Part shown: positions 58,913 to 63,610 of the stretch, piece after piece
Numbering within the stretch: position 1 is the stretch's first letter
Layout of the letters: every line of letters starts with the position of its first letter
Assembly (NCBI GenBank): GCA_021613535.1
Contig: CP075492.1
Span: 6,510,001-6,574,000 of the forward strand
Direction of reading: 5' to 3'
DNA: 64,000 nt
Origin: Adineta vaga
Taxonomy: Eukaryota > Animalia > Rotifera
Made by a program: the position numbers and the translations under genes
The notes under the pieces: generated by a model
Seen by the model: the letters and a program-made list of their open reading frames with translations, nothing else
Databases searched by the model: none
What the model was told of the DNA's origin: nothing

Positions 58913-59560
58913 TTAACAACAATTCAATGCTTCTCCAAATGATTTGATCTTCATGCGTACATTATCAACTGATCTCAAATATATGAATCGAAAAAATACA
59001 AGAAATAGACTTCGTATTCGATAATAGCAAATGTTTTTGATATCAAATCTCTTATTGCTGAAATGAAGAATGGTGGTGCATTGAAAATAATATATAAACA
59101 AGCAATAGAAAGTAACTGTACGACCATTCGATGTTGTCTTCTCCAAGAGAATAATAAACCTTGAATACATCGTTTATGTCGAATAACTTGAATTAATAAT
59201 CCTAAACTGGATAGAACAATAACTACCCATGGTATTAAACTGTTCATGACATGATCAAAACCATTAAGTAAAAATGAAGATTGTTTAAAACATGGCGAAC
59301 CAGAAACTAACCGTTGATAATTGAAAAGTTGTTTACAAGAATATGCCGTTCAATGAATCCCTATGTCATAAGAAGCATTCTATCTGCGTATAGAATATAT
59401 AATTAATATATATCCAAAAATAACAAAAGATTGCTGTTTGAGGATTTACAGTTCCTTGATATAGAAACTTCAAAGCAATTGAAAGATCGATTGTAACAAT
59501 GACTAAACAATCGATGGAATTTGACAAAATAATAGAATGCAAAACTTAATTGTATGTGTT
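58913..59560 (-). pseudogene. Decayed class A (rhodopsin-like) GPCR
   Basis: Fragments: TIDLSIALKFLYQGTVNPQTAIFCYFWIYINY (TM2-TM3), LLMT*GFIERHIL (TM3 end with a stop), then CKQLFNYQRLVSGSPCF...IPWVVIVLSSLGLLIQVI...WRRQHRMVVQLLSIACLYIIFNAP (TM5-TM6). TM4 is missing, and stops and frameshifts are present. Confidence 0.7.
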
Positions 59561-60019
59561 ATTGATGTTTCGTACACTATTGTCGAAGAGTTATTGAACA
59601 TAGACATATGTCTTGTTTTACTTAATGTTTTTGACAGAATTTTCTAGTGAGACAAAGCTTATAACATTACATTTTAATTACAAAATATGCATGAATAAGT
59701 AGATAGATTCATTTTCCAAGGAGTTCTTTCACAAATCAAGTAGCACTTTTAAACAAAATAAGTAATTCTTATATATATTTTATAGTTGAATGCTATAATA
59801 ATTACAGCCATTTATCAATTAGATGATTATCAATTGCTACGTTACATTTGAACTAACTTCATACAAACAACACACGACATCTTTATGATGCATTTCTTAT
59901 TCCTCATCAGTCTAGTGTCTAACCTGTAGAGATGTCACTTTCCATTGCATCGCAATGGCGATGGTGAAAGAGTAATTTCATTCTTTCATATCATTCATTT
60001 GTACATTTAACGAAAAACG

Positions 60020-62651
60020 ATGTTTTCCACTAAAAAAGATTTCGCTCTCATAGCTCAAAATATCTCTCTCACTTCTCAAGAGATCAATAATGAAAATTCT
60101 GAACCATTTCTTGTCAATGTTTATCAAGTACGATTATGGAAGTTAATTCATTCACCAGAAAAAGCTGATCTCGATGATCTTGCACAAGAATTTCAAGTTT
60201 GTATTACATAAATAATCATTTTTGTTTTCAAGATAATTATGTATTTTTATAGTGTAATTCACAAGAATTATTACATACTATTGTTGCCTTGTATGATAAA
60301 TCTTTACCAGAAATTGGTGGGTAAGTTCGTCTTCTCTTCTTTCTCTAAAATTGTTTTGAATTGATAACATTTATTTTAACTAGTGAAATAATTTATAATA
60401 CTATATGCGCAAGAAAAGTTGTTACAATTCTTGTTATACACGGTAGGCAAGCTTTTGTTGATATAACAGCTATAGAATCATTTCATTCTTGTTTTTTGTA
60501 GATGATCCGAAAGTAACATTAAAATCTGGAACAGTTGGAGCTCTGGTTACAGATGAAGAAGATTGTTTGGATACATTATTAGAAAATGTTGAAGAACCTG
60601 ATAGTGTTTTCCATGATGTTTTTTCTGATCGATCATCGAGTGAAAGTTCTGAAGAGTTAGTAGTTAATTATATCAAATATGTATTTTGTTTTGATTGTGA
60701 TATTACAGAGATGAAGAAGAATCTGATAGTAATGATGATGGTAATGATGAACGTGATTATTCAATTGGTATTGGAACATATTTAAAAAAAGTTAAAGCAG
60801 GAAAAGTTAATCTACACAAACGTTTGATTAGTTGTCTTAGTTTTGAGAAAATCACCATGTTTGCATCTCAGTAGGTGGAAAAAAGTTCATTTTTCCATTT
60901 CAATTAATTTCCTATTCATAGATTTCAAGAAGAACATGTCTTAGATCTTCTATTATTAGCCTGCCGAAAAAAATTTCGTGGTCGAGGTATTGGTCGACAT
61001 TTGATGAAAGTAAGACAAAAAATGAAAGAAAATATTTCCATATGAGATCACTTTTTTTCTCTAGTTATTAATGAATCGAGATTATATTGGAGATTTTGAT
61101 GCAATAATAACTGCATCAGATCAAAGTGCAATTGATTTCTATCGAAAATTTGGTTTTACGGAAGATGCGATTTTATTAAGTAAATATAAGTAAGAAGAAT
61201 TTACAGTTTAGAATTGTTTATAACTCGAAGTTGTTCACAGAACTATTGGTGATTGTTGGACAAATACAACGAAAATGTGTTATCTACCGCCTTATAATAG
61301 TAAAAAGATTAGTGTGATCTTAAAAATAGCAATGACATTATTTCTTAATTTGTTTAGTTATTAATGAAGATCCTGTTCGATGTTTAACGATGATGGATGA
61401 TCAATTTCAAAAATGGTATTTTCTTTGAATTTCAATAGTTTTCTTACTATTTATGTCAATTTTAGGCAAAGAGGAATGTTTAATAGTTATCAAAATCAAG
61501 CAGCTTTATTCAATCGATTGAAAAATGAAATGATTGGCTTATATGCGAAAGTAATTTACCGAATTTCGAGATTATTTTTCTTTTCATATCGATAGTTTTT
61601 CTAATCAAGATCAATGCTCAAGAACAAACAATTGTTTCACTGAATCGAGAACGATTTCTATTGGCGAAAGAGAATGCTTCTTTGAGTAATTTAAAACGAA
61701 AAGATTCATTTTGTTTTCTTTTATCAAGATTCTTTAGAGAAAAGATTATCTCAATCCGCACTATCTGAAAATGATAATAATGAAGGTAAATAAGAAAGTT
61801 AATTTTAAAGATAATCCAAATCTTTCGTTTCTATATTCAGAATGTGAACAACTTGATACATTACAAATGATTCAAGAAATGAAACGAATGTCGATAATCA
61901 ACGAAAAATTATTAGTTGCTCAAATGTCTCTCTTAATGGATAATAATTGTGATACACAAATAGCTGTTGAATACTGTCGAAATAAACTCAAAGATGGAAA
62001 GAAGTATCAGATCAAAGCAGAAAAGGTTTTTTTTTATAAACTGATATTTATTTTTGATTTTCACGTTGAATAAGACAATGATTATAGGTTACTCTTGAAT
62101 CGGCAACAAAGGCGCTATATCAAGCTTCTCTTCCATTACTTCACAATGGTAATCAGAAAAATGAAACATTACTTTTCTATTCTGGTCATCATGAACATCT
62201 TGATATAATAGCTAATGCTGGTTTTACTAATGAAGGTAAATCATTCCTTATAAATCGATTTTAGTTTTCTTCATTCGTTGGTTTAGATTTTCTCTATGGT
62301 TCATTTGGTAAAGGTCTTTACTTTCATACAAATATAACCAATCTATCAAAAGAAGTTAGTTTAATTATATTATTAATCATTTGTTTTATTCTTCTTTTAG
62401 AAATATCTTCTATGTAAAGTAGCATTAGGTCGAATTGAACTTATATCGAAACCAAAAACAAAATCTACCATCACATTAAAACGAAATAGTGATTATGATT
62501 CTGTTAAAGTGAGTTAAATATTTCTTTTCAATTGTAATTCATATTCATTTCTATCTAGATTCTCGAGATGGATATGAATGAAGATGATGATGAAATAGTT
62601 ACATTTGATGCTCATCTTGCTTTACCACTATTTATTATAACATTTGAATGA
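60020..62651 (+). CDS. GCN5-like GNAT acetyltransferase with acidic insert, coiled coil and PARP/ART-like C-terminal domain (~18 short exons; 5' end unresolved)
   Basis: Spliced: LYDKSLPEIGGEIIYNTI...VLDLLLLACRKKFRGRGIGRHLM...IITASDQSAIDFYRKFGFTED (GNAT motifs A and B). C-terminal: ETLLFYSG...IIANAGF...GSFGKGLYF...LLCKVALG...YDSV...DEIVTFDAHLALPLFIITFE*. Confidence 0.8.
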
Positions 62652-62713
62652 GAATAAATGATAAAGATAAAAAGAAACAAAATCTTGTATTGATCTTTTT
62701 TTAGTGCAATAAA

Positions 62714-63610
62714 TTAATTCATTTGACTTTTTCTCATTAAATAAAGTCGAATTGGACTTGATACAGTCATTTTAATTGAATTCATATCAAAATTTTCATC
62801 ATTTGTTCGTCGATCCGATGTTTTTATATAACAAACAGCTAATTTATTACGTAATCTTTCTAAAAGATCATGGAGAGCTTGTTCACCTTCTTCTTTTCGG
62901 TATGTTTGTAATCCCGACAATGTTTGAATAAAACCAAGAAATTGTCCGATTGTTGTTTCAATGCGTTTTTCAATTGTATATTCAACAAGTGTCGATTTAT
63001 AAGGCAATAATGGTAATAATGATTGATAATAATCATCCGCTAACCATCGTTTACTATTCCAATATGGAAATAATGTTACTTGATTAAATTCATGATAAAC
63101 AGCATCAGCAGTTGGATTGTCTAATGTTCCTAAAGCGTATGTCCATACAGCAAGAACGCCTGTATTTGGTTTTAATACACGTTGAACTTGTTCGACAAAT
63201 GATTCAATATCAAGCCAATGTAAAGTTGTTGCAATAGTTATCAAATCAACAGAATCGGATTGAAGAAATGTCAGATCTTCAGCTTTTTGACAACGATATT
63301 CAATATTATCTTTCGATATTGCATGCGCAATTTGATTAGCACTGACATCAATACCAATAACTCGATCACAAAATCTTCGAATGAAAAATAAGAAACTTGA
63401 AAAGAAGTAAAAGAATATTTACGTGCTCAATTCAATTGTTGCTTGTCCATTTCCACAACCGACATCAAGTGCTAATGGAATTTGTTCATTGATTTGTTTT
63501 CCATGAAAATAATAGTTAATAATATATTCGAATAATTGTCTCGGATATCCAGGTCGATGTAGACGATATTTACTTGTATGATCTTGTTCTTCAAATAATT
63601 GATGGCTCAT
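62714..63610 (-). CDS. Class I SAM-dependent methyltransferase (Methyltransf_11, Tmt1/Crg1-like); 2 exons
   Basis: YRLHRPGYP, motif I LDVGCGNGQ, VIGIDVSANQI, SVDLITIATTLHW and RVLKP. One short intron at ~63375-63422. Confidence 0.9.

Follow-up and report, generated by a model that had tools for sequence, protein, structure and literature searches.

A GNAT acetyltransferase domain and a divergent PARP-like domain encoded by one spliced gene of Adineta vaga, a bdelloid rotifer

In PARP-family proteins the catalytic domain is joined to a wide variety of reader and effector domains, and one of these proteins, PARP13 (ZAP), is a pseudo-PARP whose catalytic triad reads Y-Y-V. On the acetyltransferase side, NAA50, the catalytic subunit of NatE (PDB 3TFY), is a single-domain GNAT enzyme of 169 residues, and GCN5/PCAF (KAT2) carries PCAF_N and a bromodomain together with the common GNAT fold. 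A GNAT domain is also reported for SLAP (FAM169A/SLAP75, soluble lamin-associated protein), where it lies within the N-terminal half (PMC10958201). Over-expression of 17 PARP genes after radiation has been reported for the bdelloid rotifer Adineta vaga, and the PARP repertoire of bdelloids is expanded and stress-induced (PMC10809525). The window analysed here is a stretch of 64,000 nucleotides of A. vaga DNA (assembly GCA_021613535.1, contig CP075492.1, positions 6,510,001 to 6,574,000 of the forward strand). Within it we describe a plus-strand gene whose single product combines a GNAT acetyltransferase domain with a C-terminal domain that sequence comparison places, as a divergent member, in the PARP family. 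All coordinates below are positions within the window unless another record is named.

From N- to C-terminus, the protein consists of a conserved N-terminus, a GNAT domain interrupted by an insert, a helical or coiled-coil region (residues 298-386), a further helical region (residues 387-448) and a 138-residue PARP-family domain. The original prediction, made from the DNA letters of the window, had presented this architecture as new. That holds for the literature, in which we found no paper describing a GNAT-PARP protein, papers on PARP-family domain architecture and on rotifer repair genes included, and none containing the locus tag I4U23_012772; the lone paper that joined "GNAT", "PARP catalytic domain" and "fusion" was rejected, the word in question being "Gnathostomata". 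It does not hold for the databases, since GenBank and UniProt already have entries for the protein, annotated either as hypothetical or as an "N-acetyltransferase domain-containing protein", and a cluster in the ESM Atlas is automatically labelled GNAT plus PARP. The value of the gene is that of a functional hypothesis and not of a sequence discovery. Each of the two domains is of a known family.

The two domains and their closest relatives

The GNAT half is recognised directly in the complete protein (P0020), in which residues 192-270 exceed the cutoffs of several Pfam models [Acetyltransf_7 (PF13508), 36.4 bits, cutoff 27; Acetyltransf_1 (PF00583), 30.6 bits, cutoff 20.7; Acetyltransf_10 (PF13673), 27.4 bits, cutoff 23.6]. 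GNAT models likewise score above their curated cutoffs in the orthologs and, when the exons are taken one at a time, exons 6 and 7 give collinear Acetyltransf_7 matches (model positions 32-51, then 67-84). The acetyl-CoA-binding motif A, R226-G-R-G-I-G231, satisfies the pattern Q/R-x-x-G-x-G/A, as do the RGRGLG, RGQGIG, RGKGIG and RNNGIG of the other bdelloid sequences compared; a distant relative described below (P0022) reads RGFSLG. Asp215, on strand beta4, is invariant even in that relative and is aligned with Tyr73 of NAA50. The insert that interrupts the domain (residues 117-166) is 44% Asp or Glu and 18% Ser.

By sequence, NAA50 is the best solved relative. Searched against the PDB, the complete protein ranks NAA50 first (E = 4e-5, residues 208-279), followed by a bacterial GNAT protein (9e-4), Tetrahymena GCN5 (1.2e-3), PCAF (0.047) and yeast GCN5 (0.049). 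NAA50 has the very same motif B, SAIDFYRKFGF, and a similar motif A (R-x-G-I-G). The resemblance does not imply orthology. NAA50 has no acidic insert, coiled coil or PARP-like domain, it has Tyr73 where the rotifer protein has Asp215, and the surroundings of its His112 fall in an alignment gap. The original prediction had called the N-terminal part GCN5-like, and this stands as a superfamily (GNAT) assignment but not as membership of KAT2. The pairings of motifs on which it was based are plausible, Asp215 does fall where that prediction puts the catalytic Glu of GCN5, and Tetrahymena GCN5 gives the longest alignment, including the last strands (residues 206-296). However, the similarity is weaker than that to NAA50, a profile of the orthologs places GCN5 ninth in the PDB (E = 4.4e-3), and no bromodomain, PCAF_N or further domain was found in the protein with Pfam at E ≤ 1, the missing bromodomain having been pointed out from the start. 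PCAF_N (PF06466) instead matches a separate locus on another chromosome (G000:C4:7109638-7110665; 72.8 and 36.3 bits), presumably where this genome encodes its genuine GCN5/PCAF, which indicates that the gene described here is not the rotifer's GCN5/PCAF. For the N-terminal 372 residues, the nearest neighbours in feature space (scores 0.95 and 0.92) are uncharacterised clusters from chordates, about 554 and about 300 residues in length, that match GNAT weakly. Their sizes suggest that they may be FAM169A and FAM169B, a lead only. As described, FAM169A/SLAP75 differs from the rotifer protein in having no PARP-like domain (PMC10958201).

The C-terminal 138 residues (449-586) are assigned by sequence comparison to the PARP family, as a divergent member, and the assignment came through the orthologs. 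Searches were made with single exons until a natural protein identical to the gene model was found, after which P0020 served as the query. Exon 14, compared with 1.84 billion representative sequences, retrieved rotifer fragments, one of them P0007, a spliced C-terminal fragment of 148 residues from Didymodactylos carnosus, from which P0012 (251 residues), P0015 (338 residues) and then the full-length proteins were reached. P0007 matches the PARP catalytic domain PF00644 just above its cutoff (26.8 bits, cutoff 26.7, E = 4.5e-6) and PARP4 in the PDB (E = 3e-4), and P0012 scores 24.2 bits, below the 26.7 cutoff. A profile of the C-terminal domain built from seven species or copies (A3) gave 33 PDB matches at E ≤ 1, every one of them a PARP catalytic domain (PARP4, 2.5e-5; tankyrase-1, about 0.009; tankyrase-2, PARP1 and PARP15); with a full-length profile (A2), no PARP was listed in the PDB at E ≤ 1. 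Searched individually, the four PARP-like exons gave no Pfam match, because the pieces are too short, and exon 14 by itself had only chance matches in the PDB. The ESM Atlas model of P0007 (predicted template modelling score, pTM, 0.76) has PARP clusters as its structural neighbours (template modelling score, TM, 0.74-0.84), among them a tankyrase cluster at TM 0.80. The top neighbour is a mostly rotifer cluster of 60 members and 583 residues, labelled GNAT (72%) and PARP PF00644 (48%).

The alignments show which parts of the PARP catalytic domain have been kept. The elements GxGxYF, LxCxVxLG and (D/E)E-x-V-x-(Y/F) of PARP4 and of tankyrase-1/2 are present: G-x-G-I-Y-F aligns with G-K-G-L-Y-F, which contains Tyr509, and the PARP4 sequence DDEFVVY aligns with the profile consensus DDEIVIF (DDEIVTF in A. 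vaga, with Glu568). Tyr509 and Glu568 are invariant among the orthologs. The tankyrase sequence NERMLFHG--S aligns with the consensus NETLLFYSGHS (in A. vaga the final position is H483), so the triad is Y479-Y509-E568 as opposed to the H-Y-E of catalytic PARPs, with Tyr in place of His in every ortholog. The position of the invariant Gly is Ser480 in A. vaga and Y, V, F, N, L or A in the orthologs. Thus, relative to the H-Y-E PARPs, the rotifer domain keeps the Glu and lacks the triad His; its Tyr at the first triad position is shared with PARP13. The loop between GLYF and LLCKVALG, much longer in tankyrase and PARP4, is short and varies from one ortholog to another. In PARPs the loop after GLYF carries the Ser and Tyr that bind nicotinamide (Ser904 and Tyr907 in PARP1). 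The rotifer protein also differs from the PARP family in having no helical regulatory domain, WGR, macro or WWE domain, its partner domain being GNAT. The claim in the original prediction that the C-terminal domain is of an atypical PARP type agrees with the ortholog and profile matches and with the Y-Y-E triad. The coiled coil placed there between the two domains also found support as a helical or coiled-coil middle, the stretch of P0022 equivalent to exons 10-11 weakly matching a solved coiled coil.

One transcript, and its conservation among bdelloids

We built the gene model from positions 59400-63200 in six frames. It runs from an ATG at 60020 to a TGA at 62649-62651 in 17 exons separated by 16 introns of 46-63 nucleotides, all GT-AG and each with a pyrimidine-rich acceptor. 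The coding sequence has 1761 nucleotides (586 codons), its sole stop is the terminal one, and the frame is closed 5' of the ATG by an in-frame stop at 60008-60010. The translation agrees residue for residue with UJR08506.1 (P0020), annotated "hypothetical protein I4U23_012772 [Adineta vaga]" on a 20.35-Mb record. The limits drawn for the gene in the original prediction (60020-62651) are exactly those of the start and stop codons, and all the motifs quoted there are present in the model; its division into many small exons was also correct, but not their number, which had been put at about 18.

To this model we can add transcript evidence. Positions 59600-63000 (3401 letters) were compared with Logan contigs from four runs belonging to four studies; such contigs are uninformative on expression level, strand and transcript ends. 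Runs from the same organism contain about 0.42 of the sampled 31-letter words, close to what sequence from exons alone should give, since words lying wholly inside exons make up about 0.48 of the total. For 15 of the 16 introns the contigs show GT..AG joints at the coordinates of the model, and the remaining one (61189>61241) was deduced from record 1 of X1, in which positions 609 to 932 (324 nucleotides) correspond to exons 8-12. The same record (1712 nucleotides) takes in every exon between 60073 and about 62655, record 3 of X11 (1956 nucleotides) also passes from 60073 through every exon and continues unspliced to 62899, and record 4 of X12 starts at 59964, in the 5' untranslated region (UTR). 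In each of two studies, therefore, a single spliced contig derived from RNA contains both the GNAT part and the PARP-like part. The original prediction had called for RNA evidence of a spliced transcript, and the contigs from the four studies confirm the junctions and a single gene. The gene is real and expressed, with one mRNA encoding one chain of 586 residues.

That the two halves could be separate genes, or their junction an artefact of annotation or assembly, is suggested by some ortholog models in the databases that are split or partial, for example a 190-residue "PARP" of A. steineri (P0013), a 382-residue GNAT model (P0029) and the partial models of D. carnosus. These partial models are located on short contigs. 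Against separate genes stand the single spliced contigs through all 17 exons in the X1 and X11 studies, the continuity of the frame across the exons, the full-length models of 583-587 residues in three Adineta species, and P0015, in which one open reading frame (ORF) leads from the GNAT domain into the PARP-like part. We regard this explanation as extremely improbable.

Single-letter differences between the assembly and the runs occur within the coding sequence at 60057 (A>G), 60545 (G>T), 60743 (A>G), 62192 (T>C) and 62201 (T>C), and are probably strain or allele differences. An alternative in-frame acceptor at 61729 was rejected, the contigs using 61738.

Both halves are collinear in Adineta, Rotaria and Didymodactylos. 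Full-length orthologs are found in A. steineri (P0019, 583 residues) and A. ricciae (P0021, 587 residues), and loci of other rotifers from metagenome and Logan assemblies have the exons in collinear order, L007 and L010 with all of them, L006 with exons 6-17 and L004 with exons 13-17. The ratio of nonsynonymous to synonymous substitution (dN/dS, Nei-Gojobori) is 0.07-0.09 in the GNAT core, 0.07-0.10 in exons 9-11, about 0.2 in exon 13 and 0.15-0.27 in the PARP-like part, values that are rough because dS is near 1 or saturated. Both halves are under purifying selection. In the A. vaga assembly (100.8 Mb, 6 contigs), searches by DNA, with exons 7 and 14 and with the whole protein found only the gene itself and no paralog or ohnolog; in D. 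carnosus there are two copies, with 80% identity to each other.

The coding sequence remains collinear despite introns that are absent in one species or another. Introns 9, 10 and 13 are missing in L007 (9681-10306), intron 13 in L006 (833-1159), and introns 13 and 15 in L010 (4088-4641). The introns of D. carnosus (L004) are much longer, with about 460 nucleotides between exons 15 and 16, for example.

In the distant relative P0022 (37% identity; L011-L013), the N-terminal region, acidic insert, GNAT domain and coiled coil are all present and a stop then follows. We found no PARP match in the 4.4 kb past this stop, and a kinase ORF begins about 380 nucleotides downstream. The PARP-like module thus appears to have been added, in the bdelloid lineage, to an older protein made of a GNAT domain and a coiled coil; alternatively, the relative may have lost the PARP-like part. 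The Logan contig carrying one such relative (L011:2586-4871; guanine-plus-cytosine content 42%) has a compact series of long ORFs on the same strand, matching Glyco_transf_22, the GNAT relative in two pieces about 600 nucleotides apart, and a protein kinase.

Likely function and its alternatives

With moderate confidence, and on the strength of sequence comparison, we favor the interpretation that the protein is an active acetyltransferase carrying a pseudo-PARP module with a binding or regulatory role. The GNAT half is predicted to be a working acetyl-CoA-dependent enzyme because its cofactor loop is intact, because it has the acidic Asp215 on beta4, where NAA50 and GCN5 place catalytic residues, and because constraint within the protein is strongest there. 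The PARP-like half would keep the fold, the stacking Tyr509 and Glu568. Having lost the His, and with a variable residue in place of the invariant Gly and an unconserved pocket loop, it is less likely to be a canonical NAD+ transferase than a non-catalytic module. The coiled coil would probably make the protein oligomeric, and histones or other basic substrates could be bound by the acidic insert.

Several observations weigh against this interpretation. The complete protein and its Adineta counterparts have no Pfam PARP match at E ≤ 1, so the assignment of this half to the PARP family draws on the orthologs, the profile and a predicted model from a third party. AlphaFold2 returned unusable models, with a mean predicted local distance difference test (pLDDT) of 37.5 for the full length (13 sequences) and 37.1 for the C-terminal domain (14 rows). 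The equivalence between the triad His and Tyr479 comes solely from HMMER alignments, and the conserved G481-H482, two to three residues past Tyr479, might supply a His in three dimensions. Finally, the invariance of Glu568 would be unexpected in a dead enzyme.

If the PARP-like half were catalytic as well, the protein would be a bifunctional writer, one of the options offered in the original prediction, using acetyl-CoA to acetylate and NAD+ to (mono-)ADP-ribosylate what may be a shared chromatin substrate. Among PARPs whose triads are non-canonical, some have turned out to be active in special contexts, and Glu568 and Tyr509 being invariant in all orthologs, the purifying selection on this half and the conserved G481-H482 beside Tyr479, which could stand in for the lost His, are all consistent with activity. 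We nevertheless consider it unlikely, given the Tyr that replaces the triad His in every ortholog, the varying residue aligned with the Gly (S, Y, V, F, N, L or A), the short and variable loop after GLYF, and the Pfam PARP scores, which are marginal or absent. The opposite possibility is that neither half is catalytic and that the GNAT-like and PARP-like folds serve for binding only, as in a scaffold or adaptor. The 50-residue acidic insert within the GNAT domain would fit this, as would the uncharacterised status of the chordate GNAT-domain proteins nearest in feature space and the motif A of P0022, R-G-F-S-L-G, which shows that the wider family does not always have Gly at the fourth position. 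Since every bdelloid sequence compared has the canonical motif A pattern, motif B is identical to that of NAA50, an active enzyme, and the GNAT core has the lowest dN/dS in the protein, a purely binding role seems rather improbable.

The expanded, stress-induced PARP repertoire of bdelloids makes the gene a reasonable candidate for a role in their chromatin or damage biology, a setting also conjectured in the original prediction with a view to desiccation tolerance. At its most speculative, the protein may be a coupling device, either for dual acetylation and ADP-ribosylation of chromatin or repair proteins, or as an acetyltransferase switched by NAD+, ADP-ribose or poly(ADP-ribose) at the Y-Y-E domain, that evolved within the expanded PARP response of bdelloids to damage by desiccation or radiation; we hold this to be quite doubtful. 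Should the PARP-like domain have kept an ability to bind NAD+ or ADP-ribose, acetyl-CoA-dependent and NAD+-dependent signalling would be physically linked in one polypeptide, and if it is a pseudo-PARP, as we favor, it would be a further case of a dead ADP-ribosyltransferase (ART) fold reused for binding.

Feature coordinates and the convergent neighbour

The coordinates of the exons and of the flanking transcribed stretches are collected in Table 1.

Table 1. Exons and flanking transcribed stretches of the GNAT-PARP gene, in window positions
Feature	Positions	Strand	Evidence
5' UTR, minimum extent	59964..60019	+	X12 record 4 start; stop at 60008-60010
Exon 1, residues 1-59, conserved N-terminal region; orthologs begin MF(S/L/A)(T/S)KKDF	60020..60196	+	model, contigs, orthologs
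Exon 2, residues 60-82, LYDKSLPEI; probably alpha1-alpha2 of the GNAT fold (fold placement inferred)	60253..60320	+	model, contigs, orthologs
Exon 3, residues 82-101	60384..60442	+	model, contigs, orthologs
Exon 4, residues 102-153, start of acidic Ser-rich insert	60502..60655	+	model, contigs, composition
Exon 5, residues 153-207, end of insert and strands before motif A; Acetyltransf_1 match from residue 192	60709..60870	+	model, contigs, Pfam
Exon 6, residues 207-236, GNAT beta4 with D215 and acetyl-CoA loop R226-G-R-G-I-G231 (motif A)	60922..61009	+	Pfam, PDB search
Exon 7, residues 237-278, GNAT motif B; SAIDFYRKFGF identical to NAA50	61065..61189	+	Pfam, PDB search
Exon 8, residues 278-298, final GNAT strands; IGDCWTNTTKMCYLPPYN same in L007 and L010, first residue V for I in L006	61241..61299	+	model, orthologs, Tetrahymena GCN5 alignment to residue 296
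Exon 9, residues 298-317, start of highly conserved helical region	61358..61415	+	contigs, orthologs, dN/dS
Exon 10, residues 317-345, conserved helix	61466..61550	+	contigs, orthologs, dN/dS
Exon 11, residues 346-371, coiled-coil-like helix	61610..61685	+	contigs, orthologs
Exon 12, residues 371-387, variable linker	61738..61785	+	model, contigs
Exon 13, residues 387-448, helical region preceding the PARP-like domain; conserved QMSLLMDDDC	61841..62025	+	contigs, orthologs
Exon 14, residues 449-498, start of PARP-like domain; QKNETLLFYSGHH holds Y479 at the PARP catalytic His position	62088..62235	+	orthologs, PDB profile alignment
Exon 15, residues 498-520, FGKGLYF with Y509 as second triad residue	62287..62354	+	PDB alignments
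Exon 16, residues 521-556, ART-fold strands LLCKVALG and YDSV	62401..62508	+	PDB alignments
Exon 17, residues 557-586 and TGA; DDDEIVTF, E568 aligned with the PARP4 catalytic Glu	62559..62651	+	PDB alignments
Transcribed stretch 3' of the stop, overlapping the convergent gene on the minus strand at its 3' end	62652..62899	+	X11 record 3; contigs cannot show the true 3' end

Hexamers resembling poly(A) signals follow the stop codon at 62653, 62708 and 62736. The neighbouring gene lies on the minus strand (62714-63244 and beyond), and its end is 62 nucleotides from the stop codon of the gene described here. Contigs derived from RNA pass without splicing from exon 17 into this neighbour, to 62899 in X11 and past 63000 in X5, which indicates that the 3' ends of the two genes probably overlap. 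The last exon of the neighbour had no Pfam match when searched alone. It is 50-66% identical to ORFs at L006-L010 that match Methyltransf_11 or Methyltransf_25, and this similarity at the orthologous loci indicates that the gene pair is syntenic across bdelloids.

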